From Thalia democratica (Eukaryota): 64,000 bases of DNA. Location: NCBI GenBank assembly GCA_965202585.1, contig OZ241833.1:22258001-22322000 (forward strand), given 5' to 3'. Positions 3,001 through 59,690 of the stretch are shown in pieces (within the stretch, counting starts at the first letter, position 1; each line of letters begins with the position of its first letter). The notes under the pieces were generated by a model. The model made no database searches. It was not told where the DNA came from and saw only the letters and a list, made by a program, of their open reading frames with translations. The position numbers and the translations under genes were made by a program.

Positions 3001-4496
3001 GAAAAAATAAGTAAGTCTTAAAATTTTAAGTTTAAAAAAATCAATTTAATGTTTTGCTATAAGAATTTTATTTATGTGAAAGTGTGCAATGTTAGGCTTT
3101 AAAATAGTTTTTGTTATATAAAAATTTTAGTAAACATTTTCAAAAAGTCTTTATTTGAAACTATAGTAAAACTAAAATAAACTTAAAAAAAAACACTAGA
3201 CTTGATTTATTTTTAGGCTAATAGTGTAAATTGATTAAGTTATGTTATTAGTCAACTTTATAATATTAAGTATACAACCTATATTTAAACATATACATAT
3301 ATGTAATTTTATAAGTTTAGGTATTTCTGTACCTCATTTTTAGTTGGTCTATTTGTCTTGTACAATATTTTTTAAATGGGATCATTGTTAGATATTTTTA
3401 GCAACTTTAAAAACTAATATTAACAAATGAAGCTTTAATATTTAAAAGTCTTTTAAGTCAAACTTATCTATAATTTTTACTTCAAATCTAAAATTATTTA
3501 TTTGTTTAGTTTAAAATAACAAACCTTATTTATCAGCCTTGTTTTAAAAACATTCTTTCCTGCCTTTTAATAATACTTTAAATATTTTTGAAAATCTATA
3601 TATCAAGGCTTGCTCAAATTGTTAATTTTAAGTTTTAAGTAAAAATACCGGAACAAATTTCAAAGAATGGTAGCTCTAAAAAGCAGTTTAAAGACTTTAT
3701 ATCAGTTTTTCTACCGTGTTGATCTGATATTTTATGACATTTTGTTTTTACTTTTGTAAATTAATTACACATTATAAGCAAGTTATCAGAGACGTTATCA
3801 TAATTTTTAGATGTTCTCAAAATCTATACATTTTCTACTAAAACAAGTTTGTTTAACTAAAAATTATAAACCTCTGATAGCAGACTACTAAGTAAGGTCG
3901 TCTCTTAATTATAAAAAACTTCAGGTAGACTCAGACTTTAAAAAATTCTTAAACTTGAAAAAGTAAAACTTGTAACTCTATTATCTGACAAAATAATCCT
4001 AACACTTTTTATAAAGCCTACAACTTCAAAACCATTGAAAAAAATATTTTGAAGGTAGCAGATTAGACTTTTTTTACCAACAATATACACTCACACGGTT
4101 GCAAGTTAAATTAATACTTCTCAATTTTATTTTTTACGTTTATGCTTAACAAGAAAATACTTAACACATCCTCATTTATATTAATTTTAACTTAACAGCA
4201 CAATTTTTATGTACAACAAATATTGAGTTTTTGATTGTTTTTTTCTTAGTTGTTTGTTTAGTAAGAAGCAACAAAACCTGAACGATCAATGAGCTGTAAA
4301 ATTTTGAAACGTTTTTTAGGGAATGTGTATATGTAATTATGCCAATGATAGCCTGCAATTATCATGGTCAAAATTTGTATTTATTGGTTTAAAGACTTAT
4401 TATTTTTTATTTCACTGTTTTTTGATAGTATTTAAAATGTTGTAATAGTGTATATGAAAATTTTCACGTATTTTTGTTTTATTTATTTCACTGAAC

Positions 4497-4570
4497 TTAT
4501 ACACCAGGTCCTTAGACCAAACTTTTTGAGCGCTTTTTTATTGTTCAATAAACAATAAACTAAATAAAAT
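4497..4570 (+). repeat. Interspersed SINE-like repeat, 3' part (copy 1)
   Basis: CACCAGGTCCTTAGACCAAACTTTTTGAGCGCTTTTTT core followed by an AATAAAC-repeat tail; homologous to four other copies. Confidence 0.75.
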
Positions 4571-28767: not shown

Positions 28768-28885
28768 ATTTTTGTTGAACAAAAAATAGCGCTCAAAAAG
28801 TTTTTTATGAGGACCAGGTGCACAAAAAAACCTTTCGGTTGTCGAGTCATCCACGACAATGGTCATAATTTAATGTCTGTTCCAG
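28768..28885 (-). repeat. Interspersed SINE-like repeat (copy 2)
   Basis: AGCGCTCAAAAAG...GGACCAGGTG...CTTTCGGTTGTCGAGTC on + strand. Confidence 0.75.
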
Positions 28886-31800: not shown

Positions 31801-32324
31801 GTTGCTTAGTTTATAAAAATTCGTACATAAAACAATAAGTTGTGTAAAAACTAAACACTTTTACAGGGATTTAACTAAGTAAAGATGAGCTGTTTTTATC
31901 ACAATTAAATAACACCTTAAGAGTTCAAAGTTATAATTAATATAAGTAAAAGCGTATAAACAAACAAGCATTATATTATTTGTTTCTAAAAGGAGAATAT
32001 CGTACAACTTTGATGCTTATCGACGCTTTGTCGCTGTTTCAACAAAAAATAATTAGTTTAATGATAAATCACCTTCGTAATTAGATAAGATCGTATAAAA
32101 CTTAAAAAAATCATATTAATTTCTATCAAGTACCCTAATTACTGATAAAAATACTCTTATAGCGTTTCGTGTTAACTTTTTTTTTATGTTACTGACTACT
32201 AGACGTTTGTGCGCATTTAATATACGATATTTAATTTACTAACGTCTTTAATTCAAAGTAGAACAGTTTCAAACTCTCGCTGTTTAAAAACATTGAAAGC
32301 ACCTTAAAATGTATACACGAAACT

Positions 32325-32460
32325 TATTACTATTGTTTATTGAACACCAAAAAAAGCGCTCTAAACATTTTTTTTTTCTAGGGCCTGGTGCACGAAAAAA
32401 ACCTTATGGTTATCGAGTCTTTCACCACTTGGATACCTTCTAACGTCTTTTTTAGGACCA
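32325..32460 (-). repeat. Interspersed SINE-like repeat (copy 3)
   Basis: AAAAGCGCTC...GGCCTGGTG...GGTTATCGAGTC...AACGTCTT...AGGAC on + strand. Confidence 0.75.
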
Positions 32461-38744: not shown

Positions 38745-40940
38745 GTCTAGATGTTAATAATGTTTAGAGAATGTATTTAGATTAATTAAATCTAAACGTA
38801 TGAATTTGTAGATAAAACATTTTAATAAAAGCTTCTAAGACAGTTTAAAGTTGTCTACGTTAAAGTCAATATACTTAGTTCAATTCAGCTAACTAGTTTT
38901 AAATATTGTAATAAATCAAATATTTATTTGTTAACAAAGGCTTAGTAGCCTTTTATACGTAAAGAATCAGACTTATTTAGGAAAAGCACACGGGTCAAAA
39001 AATATTTTCAGTCCATTTGAACATTGAAAACTATATTGAAAACACTGTATAACTCATAAAAAAATTGTGAAAATTAACTGTAAAATATTTTTTTTTGGAA
39101 AGTTGTTATTAGCCTAAATAAAACGTAACAAACTGTAGGCTTGAGGGGCCGGATCCATTGGCCGTACTTTGATCTTCTTCCTTTATTTCAATCATTTTTT
39201 TTATAAACTAACTCAGGAGCACAACCATCTGTTAAAAAAATAATATGTATTTTTTAGTCAGTGAAACATATGTACACAATCACTTACTTTAACTACTTAA
39301 CTTTTTTTCTAAACTTTATAATTGTAATTACTTAAAGTTATAAAAACATATCAAAATATCAAAATGGTTTACAACATTTGAATATTCAATTAAAGTGAAT
39401 TAAATTAAAACATCTAAAATATTTCGTTATCTATAAACTGGTGTTTTTTAATTTAATTTTTTTTTTCGCATAACAACATCTACAAACAAGAGGTTTCAAA
39501 GTTTAGATAAGGATTGTAAACAAAACTTTTGAAATGTTGTTTTCATTAAATATCTTAAGAGTAAAAAGTAGTAATCCTAAATAAGAGTGAGGTCGAACAA
39601 AATTCATAAAATCCATAAAAATACTATACATAAAACAGGGTGGAACGCTGGAGGTGTTGTTCCACGTAGTCAAAACTAAAAGAAGAAAAATAAAATTTAC
39701 GAATAAATTCAGATTTTTGCTTATTCATTGAATTTATTTGATATATTTGTTTTTTTTTCAAATTAATACCTTTGACCTTCAAACATTTGATAAGTCGGAG
39801 CTGAAAGCTCAATATGTGTCAGCTGCATCTTAAACATATACAAATTTTCAAACATAACTTTATTGAGTAGCTTGATTCTGGAGCTGATTAAACTTCAGCA
39901 CCATGTGAGTTAGAAGTAGTAATCTTACGTTATTGAAAATTAACTACAACGCTAAAACAATAAGACAGATAGTGACAACTTAAACTTGAGCAGGAGCATC
40001 TCGAGCAGTGACAACTCGAACAGGAACTATTCGAGTAGGATTAGCATAGTTTTTATGTGATAAAAAGTAATTATAAATATAAAGAAATTGTAATTTATTT
40101 GACTAAATATTTTTTATAATTACTTTGACTTTATTAAAAAAAAAAAATTTTCTACGCTAACAAATGTGTAGTTGTAATATCAAAAATTCTTAAATTAGTT
40201 CAAAATTAACAAGGCGTTCAGTCACGTTTATTAGTATGTTTTAAGTCTCACTATCTAAGAGTAGATCTTTAGATACAATAATCAAATTATTCAAAATTTA
40301 AGTTTGAAGTTTCAAGATTTTTTTTATTCGCCGCAACCCCTAACAAAAATACCACGCGACATCACTAATCACTAATACAGAATAACTGACCATCGAAAAT
40401 AGAAAATATACTAAAAAGATGTATCTGGCCGGATCCGGACTTGAAATGAGGTTTGAAACTTACACTATATATTATAGAAAACTTTTAATTTTATACTAGA
40501 TATTATGGCATAAATTCGAAAGTTATACTATATTTAGATCCTACCGGATCATAATTTGTGAATAAGATCCGGATCCTAATTATAGATCCGGTAGTTCACT
40601 AGTGAAAACAATAGTAAAATTATCTAAAAACTTCAAAGTAAATTTTACAGTAATTAAGTAAGGACTTTATCAATTTGCGACCTTTTTAAGTGAAAGCTTC
40701 ACGTAGTCTTTGAATAAAAATACCTTTATAGTACATTTCACAACATTAAATTCTTACTAACACTTTTATGCGAAGAACCCAAAAAAAGCTTGGAGAAGAA
40801 ATGTTCGTTTTAAGTTTTACAAAATTAGCACAAAATACATTTTAAAGAAACAATTTATAGTTCTTAGATTTTAAGAAAGAGTACTATTATATTAGAAAGT
40901 TTTATTGATGAAGTAATGTATTCAATGCAGTAAACGAGAG

Positions 40941-41263
40941 CCGATCATTTCTAACCCGCTATCATTTCTAACCCGGTCACTTCTAACCCGATCACTTCTA
41001 ACCCGATCACTTCTAACCCGATCATTTCTAACCCGATCATTTCTAACCCGATCATTTCTAACCCGATCACTTTTAACCCGATCACTTCTAACCCGATTAC
41101 TTCTAACCCAATCACTTCTAACCCGATCACTTTTAACCCGATCACTTCTAACCCGATCACTTCTAACCCGATCACTTCTAACCCGATCATTTCTAACCCG
41201 ATCACTTCTAACCCGATCACTTCTAACCCGATCACTTCTAAACCGATCATTTCTAACCCGATC
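40941..41263 (-). repeat. Tandem array of 15-bp GTGATCGGGTTAGAA (~21 units), left arm
   Basis: Directly visible as (ttctaacccgatcac)n on the + strand. Confidence 0.98.
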
Positions 41264-41419
41264 TGTATGAGGTTTCGTGTTTTTTTTTTTGAGATGATTT
41301 GGAGTACTTTAACGGATAGGTTTATTTAAATTCTAAAAGCTATTCAATAAATATTACCAGAAAAAAAAACAACTAAAAAAAAAGATCTGAAGAGGTTGTT
41401 AATTGAAATTGAAAAGTAA

Positions 41420-41497
41420 GACATAAAAGCGCTCAAAAAGTTTGGTCTAAAGACCTGGTGTACAAAAGGACGTTTCGGTTATTGAGTCGTATACCAC
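41420..41497 (-). repeat. Interspersed SINE-like repeat (copy 4, inside the foldback-like element)
   Basis: AAAAGCGCTCAAAAAGTTTGGTCTAAAGACCTGGTG...TTTCGGTTATTGAGTCG on + strand. Confidence 0.75.
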
Positions 41498-44360
41498 ATG
41501 CTTATAAAGTTTTTTACGAGCTTTTACACATAGTTTAAAAAAATGTTATCTATAATTTTTTAACAAAAGGATTTGTTTTTCAAAAGAAACTATTCTCAAC
41601 AAAGTTTTCATTTATTAAAGTTTTGTTTATTTTGTCTAAAATAAAACATAATGTTCAGATAGTTTTTAAGTTAAAATTTAAATATTGACGTTCATTTCTA
41701 TTGGAAGTTTGTTGTCCTACGCTAGACCAAGGCATCAAAATCTGGGTCATTTATACTGAATGACACAAAGCAAAGAGACGAAAATTTATATACTTAAAAT
41801 TCAAAATCTACAGTTTTAACTAACTTTTAAAAGATTTATAGTAAATTAAATCAACACTTTAATATAATACTAATTAACTTATTTATGATTTGGAGTAGAG
41901 GATTGTTAAAAAGATTGGTTTTAACTTTATAATAAGCAAATTTAACATCAACTCTTTCAACGATCAGTGACTTCAAATAAAACCAAACACAGCTACACAA
42001 TCTTTCATTTTAGATTCAACTTCCAATTTATTATTAACAAAAAAACCTTCTCAGCGAAATTCAACAACTTAAATTGAGACGATTTAATAAATTATTTTTA
42101 AGATTTTAGTGCAACAATCAGTAAAATAGTCTGAATCACGCAATTCTACATAATAATAAGATTCAGGGTTAATTTTATTAAACTCATTAAGAACATAGCA
42201 GAATCTCATTATTCAAACAAACTACAAAAATTCATAAATGAATTTTCTTCTTGTTAAACATCAACCGTATATACACATCTTGACTTTTAGAGTTAGGTTT
42301 TGCACTTTTGTGCAATCTTTCTGTATTTCATTTATTTTTTATAATTTGACTTTGTAGCCTTGATAAAGCATAATCAATACCATCAAAACAAACATTATTG
42401 AAGTCAGTGTACAGACAATTGTAAAAAAAATCAAAAATTTGAGTGCATTGAATTGTTAAACTACTTATAGTTTCAAATATTAAGTATTTTATCTTAATAA
42501 AGTAAACTTACATCAAAGTTGTTCTTTTTTTTTTGCAAAAATTACTTTTGTTTAAAAGCTTAGTCCAAATTTAAATTGAAAAAAAACCATGACTGCATGA
42601 ATTTATCGTTTTATTTTTGTGTTAGTTAACTATTTTAATCTGGTTCAAAAATGGATTATAAATTAACTGTAGTTAACTAGTTTTAAAAGCACTAGGAAAA
42701 GTATAAAAGTTCTGTGATCTTAAGATTATGATAGTTGTCAATGATAGAAAAATAATAAGTAATGATGCGGTAAAAGACTGTTTTGTATCTTTTCTTTGAA
42801 GAAAACTCTATATGTTTAGTATATATTTTTGTGGATGCAAGATTAGCAAGTTGTATATAAATTTAGGGCTAGTTTTTATGATATATTTTTTTTAAGAACA
42901 TTAATATCAGTATACATTAAACATTTAATAAAACATTTCATAAAATTCAATTATCGTAATTTGTAAGTGGTTTCATTTAAAATCATTATCATTAAATTCT
43001 GAGTTCTTAAAACGAAACTGTATACTGCTTAATACTAAGTCAAAGTAGACGTTGACGTTTTTTTTATACTTAGAACCTGTCATTTATAAGAACTTAAATT
43101 TTTTTTTTTTCTTTAGCCAATGGTAAATTTTTTCTAAACAATTTTTTTAAACTAAATAAGAATGGCAAAATATTTGTTTTGTCTGCAAAGAGATTAATTT
43201 TGCTACCAACATTAACTTCATTTTTTATCATATCATTTGCAAAGTTATAAATAAGAGTTGACCAATAACCTTTTCTTGAGGCACTCTACTACAATAGGTA
43301 AAAAGTTCTAATAGTGTAATACCAACTACTTCTTTTTAATTTTTATCATTTATTTATTATTTATTTTAAAATATTTGTCAACTAAAATACTAATTTAAGT
43401 CGTAATAGAAACATTTCGTTTATTATATAAATTAAGTAAACGTTTTGAAAAATAATATTTAGGCGAAAATTAATTACCGTCGGACTTGTTATAGAAAATA
43501 AACATGTTTATTTATTTATTAGTGGATTTTTTTGTTCTAGGACTTACACTAAGTAGCAATTTATTAATGGTGTGAAATCAAGACGGTCAATCGATTACTT
43601 TTGCGATTTTTTATATGACATAACTGTTTTAATACCTAGGTTATACCTAAAAGTCATGCTTTTTCACTTAATATAACAAATGTATTTTATTTCTCCTAGT
43701 GTTTGTTTGAATTCCATTATCTTACTAAGCCTATACAAGTTGTTAAACAATTTGTATAAGTAATTAAGATGAAACTTGAAACGAACCTACTATAAAATAT
43801 TAATAAATTAGTGAGCAATAATACAACATTTACGTCAGACTTACAGTATACTTTTATACCGAAATATAAAAGTTTTTGTATCTGAATATTACAATTATAA
43901 AAGTTTACAAATTTTTAATATTTGCTTAAACTAAAATTATTAAAGTCACGTGAATTATAAGGAGCTCCAATTTAATTAAAGTTTTAACTGCTTAATTTAA
44001 AATCCTACAAATAAGAGTTTAAATTATTGTAAAATTAATGATTTAGTAAATTAAATACGATTAACGAAAAAAGTCTGTTTTATTAGATTGAAAAAACAAA
44101 AAGTAATAAATAACGAAAAAAGAAAGTATGTGAAGCATGAAAAATATAAAAATGAGGTAATAAAAATCAATTTAACTTAAATTTTTTTAGTACAAAATTA
44201 AAATTTATACTAAAATAAGGTTTTACGTAACACATTAAAATCATTATTTTTTAATGTAAATAAATATTTGAGAAAATTTTATTATTTTGAAAACTTTATT
44301 AAGACTAGTTTGTTTTTGCATGAAATCTAGATAACAAAAAAATAATAAAAACAAATAAAA

Positions 44361-45288
44361 TGGGTTAGAAACGATCAGGCTAGAAGTGATCGGATTAGAA
44401 ATTATCTAGTCAGAAGTGATCGGTTTAGAAGTGATCGGGTTAGAAGTGATCGGGTTAGAAATGATCTAGTTAGAAGTGGTTGGGTTAGAAGTGATCGGGT
44501 TAGAATTGATCGGGTTAGAAGTGATCGGGTTAGAAGTGATCGGGTTAGAAGTGATCAGGTTAGAAGTGATCGGGTTAGAAGTGATCGGGTTAGAAGTGAT
44601 CGGGTTAGAAGTGATCGGGTTAAATCGGGTTAGAAGTGATCGGGTTAGAAATGATCTAGTTAGAAGTGGTTGGGTTAAAAGTGATCGGGTTAGAATTGAT
44701 CGGGTTAGAAGTGATCGGGTTAGAAGTGATCGGGTTAGAAGTGATCAGGTTAGAAGTGATCGGGTTAGAAGTGATCGGGTTAAAAGTGATCAGGTTAGAA
44801 GTGATCGGGTTAGAAGTGATTGGGTTAAAAGTGGTCGGGTTAGAAATGATCGGGTTAGAAGTGATCGGGTTAGAAGTGATCGGGTTAGAAGTGATCGGGT
44901 TAGAAGTGATCGGGTTAGAAGTGATTGGGTTAGAAGTGATCGGGTTAGAAGTGATCGGGTTAGAAGTGATCGGGTTAGAAATGATCGGGTTAGAAGTGAT
45001 CGGGTTAGAAGTGATCGGGTTAGAAGTGATCAGGTTAGAAGTGATCGGGTTAGAAGTGATCGGGTTAGAAGTGATCGGGTTATAAATGATCGGGTTAGAA
45101 GTGATCGGGTTAAAAGTGATCGGGTTAGAAGTGATCGGGTTAGAAGTGATCGGGTTAGAAATGATCGGGTTAGAAATGATCGGGTTAGAATAAATCGGGT
45201 TAGAAATGATCGGGTTAGAAATGATCGGGTTAGAAATGATTGGGTTAGAAGTGATCGGGTTAGAAATGATAGCGGGTTAGAAATGATA
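44361..45288 (+). repeat. Tandem array of 15-bp GTGATCGGGTTAGAA (~60 units), right arm
   Basis: Directly visible; inner units more degenerate than outer ones. Confidence 0.98.
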
Positions 45289-48200
45289 GTAAACCGCAGT
45301 AAACAATTGATTAAATCGATTGACTAAGTACTTAGAATTTTTGGAGTGTTTTTTTTTAGTTTTTTACATAGATGTTAATTTTATTCTTTCAGATTACTTT
45401 TAATTACTTTTGTAAGGTTTCAATTCTCATTTTAAAGTTAAATTTTATAGTCTATATATATTTTACTTAAATTTTTAGTTTTTAAAGTAGTTAAATATAC
45501 TTTTAAATTTTATAAGTTTCGGCTAAGTATGGGCTGATGAAGTTTGAAACCCACAAAAAACTAAGTAAACGTAAAAAATAATATAAATACTTTTTTATTT
45601 TAAACGTCAAACAATTTTTACCAACCATAAAGTCATATACTTAATTGAACATGTCTTCAACTCTTATCAAAGTTAGTAAGGAGCTCTCTTCTTGGTAGAA
45701 ACATTAAAACTCTACTGAATTCCAAAAATGTGTTTGTAGACAGTACTTATAAACCCAATTGTTTTGTTTGATAAATTGTTAAGTACAACTAAAAAATCTT
45801 TAATTTATACGACTTAGATTGAAATAGTATCAAATACGACATGATAAGATAACAACAGTCCAAATTGAACAGCTATTTAAATAATTTAGTTTAACAAATA
45901 TTTGATGTTGTTATTTTATCTTAACTTTAAAAAAATTTTATCTCCTAAAGTTATATATTAATTTATTAAAATAAATTAAACAATAGAAAAATAATGGAAC
46001 TTAGTAAAAAAGTAATACAAATAAGTTAAATTTCATATACTAACAAATAATTGTTTTTTAGCTAGTGTTTTACTAGATCAAAAAAAGAGGGTTTTCAAAT
46101 AGGTTCCGGATGTTTTTCTTTAAGTAGAATATGGTCGGATCTCGATCTCAGCAAAAAAATTCATGATCTAGCAGTTTTTGGATCAAGGTACTTGATCAGG
46201 TAGATTTTGATTTTAAACACTAAATCGAACATTGACAAAAGTATATATTTGTTATGTAGCGTAAAAAAAGTGCTTTACACATGTCAAAAATTAAATAAAC
46301 AATATTAAAAAACACAGTGAAATGTTTCTTTAATAACTTTATATTAAAAACCATAAGGTTTTCTTTACCAATGTAAAAGCAATTTAATAAAGTTACGGTG
46401 TATAATATTTTTTTTTGGAAATTATATTTGTTACAATTGACGATGTCATTATTAGTGTTATTTTAGAGAAACATTGTTTTAAATATAAACTAGTGAACCA
46501 AAAAAATATTGTAAACAAGTATTTTAAAAGCTAAAAAGTAAAACGTTAAACTAAAATTTAAATTTATTAAAACTAAAACTGTTGTAGAATCAAACTTTTC
46601 TCTATTGAAGACACTAGTTATACTCTGACCCCAACAGACAAAACAAGAATTTAAAAGTTTTGAAATATTCTCATCGCATAAAACATTTGAGCAGATATAA
46701 TTTGAACCAATGCTTTTTTTATTGTGGAGATACATTGCTGTGAAAAAAAAATCATACATATAACAACTATTTGACGTAAAATTAAACTTTACAATATTTC
46801 AATTTAAGTTACTTTTGAATCTTAAACAATTTGATTGTTTTTGTTATATAAATCAATAGTACACTAATTATTGGTTTTTAATTAAATAAATTAAATGTGT
46901 TCATTAAGAAAATATTTTGAAATGTAAAACTCAAATAAGCAACAATTAGAGCACTTTGGTAATGCGTAAAACATAGTATATGTTTCGCGTGTTTTAACAA
47001 AACTAAAGTTCAAACTTCTATTCGTTTTACAAGCGTCCATGTTTTAAACATTTAAGTGGTTTGGTTGTTAACTATATAGAAATTTAAGTTATCAACAACT
47101 TTTTTGTTCACTATTTAATGTTTTTTTTATTTTTGAATGCTTCATCTAAAACTTCTGCAAAAGATTTTGTTGAAAAATGGGGACCAACTTTTTGCTTGCA
47201 GTAGTTTTCAGAGAAATAATCGTGAAAAGGATTCAAGTCGGCAGTTGCTTCATCACGAGCTTTTCGAGGCGCTTAAAATGTTATGGAGTAAAAAAAAATT
47301 TTTAAGAAAATGTAGAAAAAATCACAAAGTAGTTTTAGTTTTCTAAACGTTCAAACTTTATGCAAAAGTAAAAAACAAAGTAAAGTATTTAGCAAAATGA
47401 AACCTTGACATGAGTAAATTAGAGACTTACCAAGATCTTTGTTTTTTTGTCTTATTTCATATAATAAAGAAGCTTTAGAGAGGTTTAAATTGTCACCATA
47501 GTATTGAATCCGATATTATCACTAAGTTTTATTGGTAAGTAATAATATTAGTTAGTTCTGAGAAGCAGGTAATCAAGAGTAGTTTAATTTTCGGGTTTTT
47601 TATATGCATTTTTAGTAATTGTCAATTTTATAAACCACTTGTTTAATTTTTTTGCATTAATTAAAAAGTTTTTTTTTACAACAGTTTGGTAAGGAACAGC
47701 TAAAACAAGTTAAGAAAGATACACTAAAGACAGTTTAAGAAAAATTATAACTAATTTAAACGTTATTAGGATTCTCTCTAAGTTTTGTAACAAGGTGTAT
47801 TCCATATAAAACAAGTTTTATAGTGTACTGTAATCACTTCATGACATTTGTTTAATATAAAATCGTTTTATTAAAAATTTAAATTAATTTTTGTTTTATA
47901 GGCTAATGATAACCACACTGTTTTTATGCTTATTCCAAATTTTTTTAAGTAATGAACCAGACAAGTAAAAAAAATAAGCAAGGTAAAAATAAACATCACG
48001 TAAATAGTCATAAATAAAGTTTTTATTACTGTAGGTATTGCGTTTTTATTATGATTGAAAAACATTTTTTTATGAACATTGATACTTTTAGTTTTTTAAT
48101 TAAACAAAATCAAATAAATTTTTGAATTATTTAAGTTTTAGAAATCGTAGCTTTTAAAATTTCAACTTCTATAAAAGTATAGATGCTGTAACTTATGATA

Positions 48201-50539: not shown

Positions 50540-52545
50540 GGGTAGCTGTCTAAATTGCGCGAGCTTACAAAATTGCACGAGTGGACAAAATTGCACGAAA
50601 ACACAAAATTGCACGAAGATACTTTTGCACGAAGACTAATTTGCACGAGAGCACAAAATTGCACGAAAATAAAATTGAACGTAGACAAAATTGCACGAGT
50701 GACAATTTTGCACGAAAAAGATTTATACAGTACTTGAAAAAATAAAAAACTCAGAATTAAAAATCTAATAAAGAAAGTAAACAAAAAAATTAAGTAAAAA
50801 AAAACAAATCGAATAATGAATAAAAAAATAATAATAATAACTGAATAAAAAGTGAATTAAAAAAAAAAAACAAATTTAAGTAAAAAATTATAAATTAAAT
50901 GTTAAATAGATTAAAACAAAATAAATAAAAAGTCAGAATTAAAAAAATCAAGTAACTAAATAATAAGTTTTTAAAAAATCAAAAAACAAATAATACTTAT
51001 ATAAATTAAAAATTAATAAACTAAATAATAAATACATTAAATTAAAGTCTAAAATAAAAATTAATAGAAAAAGCGAAATTAAATGAATGAATAAATTAAA
51101 TAATTAAACAAAAACTTAGAAAAATAATTATATAAATAAAAATAAATACTAGATTGTAAAATTGTATTCTAACCGTTATTAAAACATAATTACCAAAAAA
51201 AGTTTTGTTTATGTTAACGAAGACTTTTTTTTGTTAAAAATAGAAATTAACTTATTGTAGCTGTTGTATTATTTTGTTGGTTTCATTTTATTCAAAAGCT
51301 TGTATCTCCTTTTTCTTCTAAAAAATTAAGAAGAAAATAGCTTCTGACAGAGCTTTTTCACGAGTCTGGATTAGATAAGAAGAAAAAAATAGCAGGAGAA
51401 TTTTTAGAGCTAATTAGAGTAAAACGCGTGCAAATAGTGATGCAACTAAGATAAAGTTTAACAAATAGAAAATAACGATATATAAATTATGTTTGTATTT
51501 TTAAAACTCTTAGGTTTTGTAGATATAAAAATAAATCACAGAAAATTGGCATACCTTGCCAGATTTTCAATTAAAAGATCTCAAAATTTCAGTATTTTTC
51601 ACCCTATATAGCCTAAATCTTAAATTAACGTTAAATATTTGTAATAAAAAGAATTCTTTTTTTACTTTAAGAACTTGTATTTAGTATCTACTAAACAAGC
51701 TATTAAAAATCGAAATAGATTAAAACATGAGTTTAATTTGCCTTATTTTAGTTTAAAAACAAAGATATTTATACATATGAACTACACAGCCATAACAGAA
51801 CTTTCTATACAGTGCACAATAAAAATTTCATCAGACGGATTTTCTCCTTTTTAAATTTATCTAATTGTCTCACTATTTCGAATGCTCGTTATCTTTCTGT
51901 GCAAAAGTATCTTTGTGAAATTTTGTCCCTCGTGCAATTTTGTACGCTTGTGCAATTTTAAGACCTACCCATGTAAATATAATTTAATTTGTTTTTTTAA
52001 TCTTTTTTTATTTCATATTGAAGTTCAGTACAAATTTAATTTAATTTAAGTTTACATCAATTCATTTCTATTCTTTAATAAGGGTTACTTTTATTAAAAT
52101 AAAATTCTAGTTTTATCTTTATTAAAATTTTTTTTTAAATTCATATTAGTTTTTAAACACAATAATTTAGTTTCAATTAAAAAACAGTTATATAAAAAAA
52201 AAGTAAAATAAAGTTGATTTAAAGCTAATTAAGTCAAAATGAATTACACCAATACATGCTTATTATTTTTTTATATAAAATATAAAGGGTTTTTTAAATT
52301 CTAAATTTAGTTATTTCAAGTTAGTATTTATTTGCGCCAAATTGACCCTCCGTGCAAAACTGCCACTCGTGCAAAATTGACCTTCCGTGCAAAATTTTGT
52401 GCCCGCGTGCAAACTAGTCTTCGTGCAAAATTATCTTCGTGCAGTTTTGTACACTCGTGTAATTTTGTTCTCGTGCAATTTAGTTCCCACATGCAATTTA
52501 GTAACCTCGTGCAATTTTGTCTTCGCGCAGTTTAGACCCGTTCCC
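50540..52545. mobile_element. Foldback-like element(s) with ~18-19-bp AAAATTGCACGA repeat arms
   Basis: Arm 50540-50717 (+) and arms 51891-51970 and 52331-52545 (-) all start GGG(T/A)A...(C)T(T)AAA(T/C)TGC and share the same repeat order (GAAGATAxTTTTGCACGAAGACTA); spacer extremely A-rich; no TSD found. Confidence 0.7.
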
Positions 52546-53681: not shown

Positions 53682-54950
53682 ATGGAAAAAAAGTTTCAAA
53701 AATTCAGCAATGCCAGGTTGCCAGGCGACTCAGCAGCTGACGGGGGTGTTGAAGAAAGTCTCGATGACGGTGCTCCCCCGTACACCCGTGCCTCCCAGAG
53801 CTCCTTAACCGAACCCCGCAAGAAAAAAGCGAAGCTGGAAAGTGAATCGCGAAGCAGCGGGTCTCGCGGCAACAGTGATAGTGAAGCCTCAAGCGGACTT
53901 TCTGATTCAAGCGCTTCAACCGTGTATGAAGATTCAAGTGGTTCGAGTGACAGTTCAATAGTATCGTGCGACGGTTCTAACTCCGACGACAAAATATCGT
54001 GTGGTATAGACGAAAAAAGTTGGAAGAAAGGGGCGAGTAGTACTGAAAAAAATTTTAACGAAAGTTACTTCGATTACCAGCAAAATGACAAAGTTCTCAT
54101 GCACAATAATCGTAGTTTTGTGTATGTTGGAAAAAAACGAACTACCAGTTTAGCGGTCGCTATCAAAAAGTTTTACTGTGGCAAAAACATAGACGACTTC
54201 CTAAATGATAACAGTGTACCATATGAGTTTCTATTGCAAGATACAGCAAAGGATATCTGTGTATCAAACGGAAAAGGAAGTGTTTTAAAAGTAGAAGATT
54301 GGTACGTCTTTGACAACTTCTATGTCATAGTTACCGAGTACGACGAAAGCTTCAAATCGCTGCGCGAAATTCTTTACGATGACCTTCGCGATAACATGAG
54401 CAAAATGGAATGCAAGATTATCTTCAAAGTATTGTTGAGTTTGATCTCCGAACTCCATCAGCGCTCAATTTTCCATCTTGATCTGAAGCCTAGTAACATT
54501 CTATACTGCCCACAGGAGCAGCGGATAAAGCTGCTTGACTTCGGCCACGCTGTTGACAAGAGAGATCATCTGTCAGTGACGTCTAGTGGCACAGACAACT
54601 TCCGCACCCCCCAACAAGTCAATAATGAAAAGAATTGCAACGGTGTAGATGTGGACTTGTGGGGGGTAGCACAAATAGTATTTTACTGCGCTCACGGCAG
54701 AGCAGCTTTCGAGACGGAAAGTGCCGTTACGGATAAAGAACCTGCATTTGGAGGACATGTCGGCGATGATGTGAGAGACTTGCTAGGTAGGATGATGTCA
54801 AAAAAGATCGCGGACAGGTTTTCTTCGGAAGAAATACTTGGGCATCCGTGGCTGACTGAAACGAGCGAAACAGAATGGCGGGCTGTGAGCTCTCCTGATT
54901 GGGCGAATGAAAGCTTTCCAGATTGGAAGAATGAAAGCATCGCAGAGTGA
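53682..54950 (+). CDS. Intronless PIM-like Ser/Thr protein kinase with Ser/Asp-rich N-terminal extension (422 aa)
   Basis: VAIK, VPYEFLL, VLKVEDWY, HLDLKPSNIL, IKLLDFG, GTDNFRTPQ, DLWG, DRFSSEEILGHPWL; subdomain spacing matches PIM kinases as recalled. Confidence 0.92.
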   Translation: MEKKFQKFSNARLPGDSAADGGVEESLDDGAPPYTRASQSSLTEPRKKKAKLESESRSSGSRGNSDSEASSGLSDSSASTVYEDSSGSSDSSIVSCDGSNSDDKISCGIDEKSWKKGASSTEKNFNESYFDYQQNDKVLMHNNRSFVYVGKKRTTSLAVAIKKFYCGKNIDDFLNDNSVPYEFLLQDTAKDICVSNGKGSVLKVEDWYVFDNFYVIVTEYDESFKSLREILYDDLRDNMSKMECKIIFKVLLSLISELHQRSIFHLDLKPSNILYCPQEQRIKLLDFGHAVDKRDHLSVTSSGTDNFRTPQQVNNEKNCNGVDVDLWGVAQIVFYCAHGRAAFETESAVTDKEPAFGGHVGDDVRDLLGRMMSKKIADRFSSEEILGHPWLTETSETEWRAVSSPDWANESFPDWKNESIAE

Positions 54951-56192: not shown

Positions 56193-57595
56193 CTAATGCT
56201 CCGTCAGCTTGGCGCAAGCGCACCAATTCAGTTTCTTTCCCGCGCAACCGCGCCAAGACTTTGCCGACCAACTGGAGTTGACGACGTCGTAGACCAGAAC
56301 CTCGCGCTCGTTGAGAAGCACCAACAGCTCGCTTCCGATCGAAACGACTCCGAGGAGTGGAAGACGCCACCTGGTGGAATGTCGAGGTGGCTGAGGCTTG
56401 AGTAGGACGAACCTGCCGCAAGTCGAGTCGAGCACCTCGCTAGATCGCCCCCCGATCGCGTACAGCTTGTTCCGCACTGCCGCGCACCGGTGGCCCCATC
56501 TGCTCTCGACCATGCTCGCCACGCGTCGCCACCTTCCGGCCGTGACGTCATACGCCTCGGCGGTGCTTGATATCGCGCCGTCCACGTATCCGCCGCACAC
56601 GACCACTCGTCCTTCGAACACCGCGCTGGCGGCCGATTTCCTGGCCTCGTTCAAAACGCCCATCTCCTTCCACTCGTGATTTTCCGTGCAAAACTCAACG
56701 CAAGAGTCGACGCCACGTCCCTGCCATTCCATGCACCCTCCCACTACGCAAATGCCGCTCATGAAAGAGGAAAGGCAGAACAAAATTCGCTTGTCGCACA
56801 TCAACGCCACTTGCTGCCAAGCGCCGGTCGCGGGCGAGTACTTTTCAACTGACCCCACTTTTTGCATTGAGCCGTCGTAACCGCCGAAAACGTACACTTG
56901 GCCTTTCACGCAAGCTGCTTCGGCATACTTTCGCCCGTTAATCATCCGTGGCAGCTTTCTCGACTTGGGAACGTTGTTGAAATTGACGCAGCGCACTCTC
57001 TTACTGACAGTAAAAACCAAACGTCTGTCTCTTATGTCACTTTTGCCTCCACAAAAAACAACTTCAAAGTTACTTTGTTCGCAATACCTGCTGGTAACAT
57101 CGAAGTTTTCCGAGCGAACGTGCTGCTTTTTGAGTAAAGCAGCCTCGATTAAGCCGCGGCACTCTTCGCTCGTGCTGAACGACGGCCTTTCGTCCAAAAC
57201 GTGATGCAAAGCGGGAACTGTCAAGAGCGCGAGCCTGACCTTGGACAGGAGACGCGCCGCGTGTTTGCTCCGCTTGCCAGCTCCGTGCTTCAGCCAGTCG
57301 TCCGCGGCGTTCAAGACTTGCAGCTCCGAGTCGACGTTCAACTGGCTGCTGGAAAGTATTTTCAGCACCGAGAAAAAGTCCAGCTGCGAAAAGTCTTTGG
57401 AGTCGGCGAGGGCGGGGAAGCACCGTTCCGCGTACTTTACGCAAGCTTCCCGCGCAATCCCGAAGAGCGATGACGTCACGATGAGGAGCGCGCAGTTTTT
57501 AATTGTGACGTCGACTTTAAACACGTTGCTTTCCAGCAAGATCTTCTTGGCTTTCAAGGACGCGACAAGCTCGGAGTCGTGCGTGATCGGGTTTC
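56193..57595 (-). CDS. Kelch-like protein exon 2: BACK domain plus 5-6 Kelch repeats
   Basis: BACK motif F..LDF..V.KILSSSQLNVDSELQVLNAADDWLKH; Kelch GG motifs (VFCGG, VYVFGGYDG, ICVVGG, VVVCGGY, LYAIGG). ORF extends upstream of the TTG call to acceptor tttttacag at 57596 (phase 1). Confidence 0.93.
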
Positions 57596-59150: not shown

Positions 59151-59560
59151 TTTAATATTAATGCTCTTAAAAAGGTTTTAATTGCACAAGTTTTAGTTAT
59201 ATGCATAATGGAACATTAGTTAAACTAAATAAAATAATTATTTTTAGCATTTCTTAGAAAATTTGTCACAAGTTTCTAACAAGTTTACATCTAGATTTAA
59301 ACAAACACGAATGTCAGTAAAATATTTAGTGCAATAAAACTTTGTTTTAGATTATGTTACGAAAGATAATAAATGAAGAAAAGTATAAATTTTCTAAAAA
59401 AAACAATTATCAACTTTATAAATTCAAAAAGTTTTACATTTTTATCAAGTAACATTTATTTTTAATTTAAAGTTTTATAGATTAAGGTAAACTTTGCTGA
59501 ATTTATAAATATATTTATTAAATAATTGTACTAATTTTATTATTTTTATCATACAAAAAT

Positions 59561-59690
59561 ATTGCTTATTGAACCATAAAAAAAGCGCTCAAAATTAACG
59601 GTCTAAGGACCTGGTACTTGAAAAAAACTTTCGGTTATTAAGTCGCACACCACTCTCTGTTACCTTTTAACGTCTTGTCCAGGACAATTA
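59561..59690 (-). repeat. Interspersed SINE-like repeat (copy 5, ~400 bp upstream of the Kelch ATG)
   Basis: AAAAGCGCTCAAAA...GGTCTAAGGACCTGGT...TTTCGGTTATTAAGTCG...AACGTCTTGTCCAGGAC on + strand. Confidence 0.75.

Follow-up and report, generated by a model that had tools for sequence, protein, structure and literature searches.

Foldback elements combine tandem-repeat arms with a variable, non-coding middle and 8–10-bp duplications, and most of them belong to Mutator (PMC4079207); MULE duplications measure 8–11 bp (PMC6446971). A particularly close counterpart of the locus described here is Tm1 of the root-knot nematodes Meloidogyne (Mutator/Foldback, Phantom subclass), in which arm units of 13–15 bp occur in unequal numbers, the duplications are 9 bp long and asymmetric 7-bp tip motifs (A1/A2) lie outside the inverted repeat and inside the duplications; Tm1 has a known transposase-bearing member, dozens of copies and many non-coding derivatives (PMC3169594). 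Inverted arrays of such a kind can favour hairpins and inversions as well as the emergence of new satellites, and Tetris, a Foldback-type element, is documented as the source of a satellite (PMC4079207). We analysed a 64-kb stretch of DNA (the window) in which the interval 40936–45295, 4,360 bp without its flanking repeats, is probably a single non-autonomous Foldback-type cut-and-paste DNA transposon, with duplication length and arm build pointing to a Mutator/MULE-like affiliation. The original prediction had proposed one non-autonomous transposon, and the locus does behave like a single insertion flanked by a 9-bp target-site duplication; strictly defined mobility did not follow, the contig collections searched having yielded no second complete copy with another duplication, no empty site and no transposase bearing these arms.

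Both arms are arrays of the 15-bp unit GGGTTAGAAGTGATC, and they are inverted as predicted: the left array (41263 back to 40941; 21.4 copies, 92% matches) carries the unit on the minus strand and the right (44362–45287; 61.9 copies, 89% matches) on the plus strand. The window contains 80 good matches to the unit, every one of them inside these two arrays, against a chance expectation of 0.7. The left arm proper (40944–41263, minus strand) comprises 21 units of GGGTTAGAAGTGATC reading toward the tip, and it pairs with the right arm across 320 nt at 94%. The outer 32 nt are identical (40944–40975 against the reverse complement of 45256–45287), in agreement with the earlier claim of matching outer ends that include a 2-bp-insertion unit. 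That 17-bp unit occurs exactly once per arm and stands second from the tip in both; a GGTTTAG variant likewise has its sole occurrence per arm near the inner edge. Aligned unit by unit in mirror order, the arms reach a collinear score of 24.5, compared with 10.5 for reversed order and 13.4 ± 3.5 when the units are shuffled; the observed score was reached in 3 of 2000 shuffles. The mirror-order collinearity and the unique landmarks common to both arms support homologous arms, apparently related by descent and grown independently, over two unrelated arrays. Independent expansion, foreseen from rough counts of 21 and 60 units, fits both the copy numbers and a 190-bp block present twice in tandem within the right arm (44434–44813, plus strand; 149 of 150 positions identical at lag 190), each block made of 12 units plus one 10-bp unit, so that part of the right arm's extra length is due to this duplication. 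Of the 62 units of the right arm, the innermost eight are degenerate.

Tandem arrays are hard to assemble, and the inverted arrangement could in principle be a mis-join. We regard such an artefact as very improbable: the window is gap-free (no N in 64 kb), the arrays span just 0.3 and 0.9 kb, neither the symmetric duplication nor the mirrored landmarks would be expected from a mis-join, and a large part of the stretch is contained in several sequencing runs (shares of 0.55, 0.51 and 0.42).

Exactly 8 nt beyond each identical 32-mer lies the 9-bp direct repeat GCAGTAAAC (40927–40935 and 45296–45304, both on the plus strand), which is found nowhere else in the window; here too the prediction was accurate. 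We simulated its chance occurrence on random pairs of boundaries and flanks taken from the window's own DNA: 1.3% of the pairs had some 9-mer in common no more than 30 nt from the boundary, and 0.10% had one at equal distance from both. An alternative duplication of 7 bp, AGTAAAC lying directly against the right array, was considered and set aside as less economical, since the right end would have to be truncated and the target would already have contained GCAGTAAAC-C-GCAGTAAAC in tandem.

Between the left duplication and the left arm stands the octamer GAGAGCCG (40936–40943, plus strand), the element's true tip, whose final 3 nt are at the same time part of the first repeat unit. A second copy of this end lies on an ENA metagenome assembly contig, L001, the only match (P0001/L001) to a bait made from a translated array frame (GLEVI). 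L001 holds a degenerate 13-unit array ending in ...GGGTTAGAAATGATCGGCTCCC, with the tip GGGAGCCG in the place of GAGAGCCG; 21 of 22 nt are identical up to the tip, beyond it 17 of 40 match, and the similarity ends where the window's 9-mer begins. The arm on L001 lacks the 2-bp insertion that both window arms carry, has no partner within 1.36 kb and has other sequence inside it; the rest of the element, the middle included, was not found on that contig. This tip in a different flank, an independent copy, confirms the left boundary as placed, and it rules out the candidate in which the element is the perfect inverted repeat 40944–45287 alone, as L001 shows that the octamer belongs to the element.

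The same comparison bears on the proposal that no transposon is involved, and that an error of replication or repair produced an inverted duplicate of a satellite array, with the 9-mer a coincidence or by-product. In keeping with such an accident, neither the contig collections nor the window yielded another complete copy, an empty site or a transposase, and the two tips do not mirror one another. Against it stand the low probability of an equidistant 9-mer (about 0.1%) and the left tip, which recurs on another, unrelated contig where the likeness breaks off precisely at the 9-mer; a tip that recurs with so sharp an end marks a discrete mobile boundary rather than the limit of a rearrangement at this locus. 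We judge an accident of this kind improbable.

The right end is less orderly. Its terminal octamer AGTAAACC (45288–45295, plus strand) does not mirror the left tip: reverse-complemented, it reads GGTTTACT and matches GAGAGCCG at 2 of 8 positions, the same count that the original prediction had attached as a caveat. Unmatched 8-nt tips do not refute a transposon, because Tm1 has asymmetric 7-bp tip motifs. A further peculiarity is that 7 of the 8 right-tip nucleotides (AGTAAAC) repeat the last 7 nt of the adjoining duplication, a likeness to the target whose chance we estimate ourselves at about 1 in 1000 and which the simple transposon model leaves unexplained. By analogy with Tm1, the unmatched right tip may be a family trait, that of sub-terminal inverted repeats; otherwise it would reflect later damage, in which case the copy would be frozen.

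The damage reading takes the same transposon to be dead: the right tip would once have mirrored the left (…GATCGGCTCTC) and later been replaced by copied neighbouring target when a one-ended cut was repaired by end joining. We hold this to be a serious possibility, though not the favoured one. It draws on the seven shared nucleotides, on the only other known tip (L001) being of the left type, and on the identity of the 32 nt just inside between the arms, such that point mutation cannot give six differences in eight. However, the replaced stretch is exactly as long as the left tip, an outcome not expected of a deletion with fill-in; Tm1 keeps two unlike tip motifs as a stable family trait; and no such repair product is documented for this element's family. 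The right tip might also have been templated by the target site, either through a one-ended transposase cut with copy-and-join repair or through integration guided by similarity between tip and target; paired with it is a less likely alternative, in which a telomere-type Myb protein binds the GGGTTAG core of every unit. We consider this pair of ideas unlikely. Were the first true, the locus would hold a natural scar at a Foldback end, a direct view of the cutting and immobilization of such elements; Myb-type binding of the unit core, if true, would tie the element to telomere biology.

The arrays had been described as telomere-motif satellites, but the unit shares with (TTAGGG)n only the heptamer GGGTTAG, once per 15 bp and with no 8-mer in common, and about 3% of composition-matched shuffled units do equally well. 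No tandem (TTAGGG)2 occurs anywhere in the window, even with one mismatch allowed. The tandem telomere units expected of telomeric or interstitial telomeric repeats are lacking here; neither the description nor the suggestion that the element could seed interstitial telomere-like repeats is supported, and the link to telomeres is weak.

Between the arms lies a 3.1-kb middle domain (41264–44361, unstranded) of 23% G+C, close to the 25% of the flanks and resembling ordinary intergenic DNA. It has no ORF of at least 50 aa, the longest stop-to-stop stretch being 63 aa, and its left two thirds gave no Pfam or Rfam match; these protein and RNA family searches covered 40500–43329, the arrays and the right flank. 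At 41405–41510 (plus strand) the middle contains a copy of a dispersed short repeat that elsewhere is about 130 bp long. An inner arm domain, proposed from an inverted match between 41582–41653 and 44316–44242, was rejected as too weak at 73%.

Such a middle could also be ordinary host DNA, enclosed by two arm-bearing ends or by two small opposed elements that a transposase used jointly. Foldback-flanked composite transposons of Drosophila behave in that manner. In such a case the middle would belong to no transposon family. The background composition of the middle and the lack of a detected coding or RNA signal accord with a composite origin, as does L001, which has arm and tip in common with the window and none of the middle; Foldback middles are, moreover, variable (PMC4079207). 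The inner edges of the arms, however, show neither inner tips nor inner duplications, and a composite departs from the single-transposon reading in the origin of the middle alone, on which one copy cannot discriminate. We rate it unlikely.

Other searches for further copies and empty sites added nothing to L001. Exact patterns (the 2-bp-insertion junction and a two-unit array) went unmatched in the metagenome_contigs, viral_contigs and genome_contigs (prokaryote) collections, and the translated array frames SLLTR and ITSNP gave no match as baits. Exact look-ups of four spurious ORFs from the flanks and middle, aimed at empty-site contigs, were equally negative, and no paralogue of the flanks that could act as an empty site exists within the window. 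A 283-aa ORF compared with the representatives library was uninformative, with Arg/Ser/Asp-rich low-complexity proteins swamping the results, and a literature search for the unit returned just a chance primer match.

Returning to the single non-autonomous transposon, a plausible route can be outlined. The 15-bp unit would be bound by a transposase whose gene lies elsewhere in the genome; this enzyme would pair both arms, cut at the tips and integrate with a 9-bp stagger. Unit numbers would then drift through slippage and unequal exchange, and exchange between the arms may keep their outer ends alike, with the 2-bp insertion present in both and missing from L001. The middle would be cargo or decayed sequence that plays no part in movement.

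As regards class, the locus has the tandem-repeat inverted arms of unequal unit number (21.4 and 61.9 units of 15 bp) expected of a Foldback element, together with a mismatch-free 9-bp direct repeat equidistant from the two arms. As to dispersed copies, the contig collections searched gave one further arm, on L001, with the same tip and another flank. MULE target-site duplications are typically 9 bp, and the length here falls within the Mutator/MULE range of 8–11 bp. The terminal nucleotides are not inverted between the ends in the way of Mutator/MULE elements (the 2 of 8 above), which is not disqualifying because the same is documented in Tm1 and other MULEs. Members of the hAT superfamily have an 8-bp duplication and short YARNG-type tips, which the 9-bp duplication and tips that begin GAGAG... 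and GGTTT... do not fit. Most likely, the element is genuine but ordinary, an example of the long-known Foldback/Mutator kind. It offers a cleanly delimited, apparently young Foldback-type case whose arms are built of 15-bp units, from a marine animal with an A+T-rich genome; its practical value lies chiefly in repeat annotation of the host, and it opens no new question.

Set beside individual systems, the element shares with FB of Drosophila melanogaster long inverted arms of short repeats whose unit number varies between arms (in FB also between copies), and FB likewise has a 9-bp duplication and a middle that is variable or absent; its sequence is unrelated. Galileo, of the P superfamily in Drosophila, has 7-bp duplications and a P-type transposase, and the 9 bp found here do not fit 7 bp. 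The likeness to Galileo lies in its Foldback-like long, internally repetitive inverted ends (PMC3573991). Tetris of Drosophila virilis is, like our element, non-autonomous and Foldback-type, with tandem-repeat arms, a non-coding middle and, in its case, duplications of 8–10 bp; both are assigned to Mutator on duplication length alone, but the Tetris unit is about 220 bp as opposed to 15 bp (PMC4079207). Tm1 matches closely, with arms of 13–15-bp tandem units in unequal numbers, a 9-bp duplication and short non-inverted tips (7 bp in Tm1, 8 nt here). It differs in belonging to another animal group and in having no sequence similarity in unit or tip, and our locus is known from one full copy and one solitary arm, with a right tip that repeats the target. 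So close an architectural match, unlike tips included, suggests that sub-terminal inverted repeats built of ~15-bp units arise repeatedly among Mutator-like transposons.

The element at 40936–45295 (4,360 bp) consists of two inverted arrays around a 3.1-kb middle. Tandem Repeats Finder delimits a left array at 40941–41263 (21.4 copies of the 15-bp CCGATCACTTCTAAC) and a right array at 44362–45287 (61.9 copies of the 15-bp GGGTTAGAAGTGATC); these are one 15-bp unit on opposite strands, in agreement with the original prediction of inverted arrays of about 21 and about 60 units. Matches to the unit (at most 3 mismatches, whole window) number 82, with 80 inside the two arrays (chance expectation 0.7); the remaining two carry 3 mismatches each and are chance-like. 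Pairing between the left and right arms extends over 320 nt at 94%, and their outer 32 nt are identical (40944–40975 and 45256–45287). When the arms are cut into units, each yields a single 17-bp unit, second from the tip in both, which confirms the identical outer ends with a 2-bp-insertion unit noticed earlier. The window holds no N characters, so no gaps interrupt the element.

For a unit-level alignment, the arms were set against each other in mirror order; matches between rare variants were rewarded, and surplus units of the longer arm carried no cost. The mirror-order score is 24.5 versus 13.4 ± 3.5 with the left-unit order shuffled (3 of 2,000 shuffles reach 24.5); with reversed unit order it is 10.5. 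Both arms present common landmarks from inner edge to tip: the GGTTTAG variant (a single occurrence per arm, near the inner edge in both), followed outward by the variants TTAAAAG and GATT, a stretch of AATGATC units, then the 17-bp unit and finally the terminal unit. Part of the surplus length of the right arm exists because a 190-bp block is tandemly doubled there (149 of 150 positions identical at lag 190, from 44434). Score, landmarks and block duplication therefore show that the arms descend from one another and that their lengths changed independently, as had been proposed; the two arms are one structure rather than two separate arrays. The accompanying description of telomere-motif satellites is not supported. 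The 15-bp unit and (TTAGGG)n have the heptamer GGGTTAG in common and nothing longer, a telomeric heptamer arises in ~3% of unit shuffles and 0.8% of random 15-mers, and the window contains no (TTAGGG)2 even allowing one mismatch. No evidence was found of arrays of the unit outside transposon arms, and the telomere likeness is a resemblance, not a finding.

Beyond each arm, exactly 8 nt outside the 32-mer, the predicted direct repeat GCAGTAAAC is present at 40927–40935 and 45296–45304 and nowhere else in the window. In a sample of 300,000 pairs of 30-nt stretches taken at random from the window, 1.3% have any common 9-mer and 0.10% have one equidistant from both boundaries. A search for further copies in a protein collection, with the open reading frame that runs through the array as query, matched one sequence, P0001, a spurious 85-aa ORF on L001, a 5.3-kb ENA metagenome contig. 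Its array (1366–1565) is degenerate, with 13 units and 79% matches, and ends ...GGGTTAGAAATGATCGGCTCCC before unrelated sequence; the left end of the window element, reverse-complemented, reads ...GGGTTAGAAATGATCGGCTCTC, then GTTTACTGC. Up to the tip, 21 of 22 nt are the same in both; past it, 17 of 40 are, near chance for 75% A+T DNA. Besides the array, L001 has a small dispersed repeat and another foldback family in common with the window, and nothing else. Agreement at the tip followed by loss of similarity therefore makes the octamer G(A/G)GAGCCG part of the element, whose left end falls exactly where the 9-mer starts. The contig thus supports the left boundary independently, and hence the 9-mer as a target-site duplication. 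The 2-bp insertion, common to both window arms and absent from L001, points to probable exchange between the arms of one element. What L001 carries (1366–1570) is either one end of an element or an arm on its own; it belongs to the 15-bp family, is degenerate, keeps the conserved tip and has no partner within 1.36 kb. Neither a partner arm nor a second ATATACGAT was found across the contig; the element may have been broken, or its partner may lie beyond the contig start. No further arrays came up in pattern scans of the metagenome, viral and prokaryote collections.

The outermost 8 nt of the two ends match at 2 of 8 positions, a caveat whose count was correct. This is no argument against a transposon, because Tm1, a Mutator/Foldback family of Meloidogyne, has asymmetric 7-bp motifs at its outer ends, outside the inverted repeat (PMC3169594); the authors of that study note asymmetric outer motifs likewise for Mutator-like elements, other than Tm1, whose inverted repeats are sub-terminal (PMC3169594). 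Point mutation as the source of the right tip is ruled out, since 6 of 8 tip positions differ and the 32 nt just inside are identical between arms. The final 7 nt of the adjoining duplication are found again in the right tip AGTAAACC (chance estimated at roughly 1 in 1,000). Two truly different tips may be a family trait, the likeness of right tip and target being coincidence or target preference; or the right tip may once have mirrored the left until repair, using the flank as template, overwrote it, which would have left this copy unable to move. We rate lower a reading in which the duplication is 7 bp long and abuts the right array; it requires that an end was truncated and that the target already held a tandem.

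The middle (41264–44361) has 23% G+C versus 25% in the flanks, and the ORF listing contains none of at least 50 aa there (longest stop-to-stop stretch, 63 aa). Left of 43330, the ten longest pieces between stops all stay below the Pfam cut-off, and Rfam gives no match across 40700–43329 even at E = 1; up to 43329, the extent of this coverage, the middle bears no sign of a decayed transposase gene. It does contain (~41405–41510) one copy of a dispersed repeat of ~130 bp, also found at 4497–4567 (− strand), 28771–28868, 32324–32458 and 59559–59686, and at 3209–3337 of L001. Its conserved core ...AGCGCTCAAAAAGTTTGGTCTAAGGACCTGGTGCAC... includes a small hairpin, and it has no Rfam match; this looks like a SINE or MITE. 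Parts of 40500–45700 are present in two organisms' sequencing runs and in many marine metagenomes, which assigns the genome to a marine organism. The marine metatranscriptome runs X15 and X17 hold ~6% of its sampled words; some part may be transcribed, or these runs may contain DNA carry-over.

A second, unrelated foldback-like element occupies 50541–52545, with inverted arms of 16–18-bp AAATTGCACGA-type units, tips GGGTAGCTGTC... and (reverse complement) GGGAACGGGTC..., and an extra right-end fragment at 51913–51975 ending ...GACCTACCC. No clean duplication is visible at this element, and its family also occurs in L001 (~560–1110). The window also has two long ORFs without interruption, one for a protein kinase at 53682–54950 (+ strand; Pkinase, 4e-26) and one for a BACK-Kelch protein at 56193–57557 (− strand; Kelch_1, 7e-29); the DNA in which they lie has 33–47% G+C against a genome at ~25%, and this contrast and their absence of introns are striking.

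The 4,360-bp element is Foldback-type as that class is defined: a discrete insertion flanked by a 9-bp duplication, long inverted arms of a short tandem unit whose number differs between them, a variable middle in which no coding capacity was detected, and a conserved tip. With its mirror-image arms and a tip that recurs in L001, it is best read as a non-autonomous Foldback/Mutator-type transposon, as the original prediction held, and this is probably what it is. A transposase encoded elsewhere would bind the 15-bp unit and pair the arms, cut at the tips and integrate with a 9-bp stagger; unit number would vary through slippage and unequal exchange, and arm-to-arm exchange would keep the outer ends alike. 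Foldback-type elements generate 8–10-bp duplications and are mostly Mutator (PMC4079207), and MULE duplications span 8–11 bp (PMC6446971). Tm1 has arms of 13–15-bp units whose numbers differ between ends, and 9-bp duplications (PMC3169594). With its unequal arms of ~15-bp units, duplications of the same length and unlike outer tips, Tm1 is the closest published architecture.
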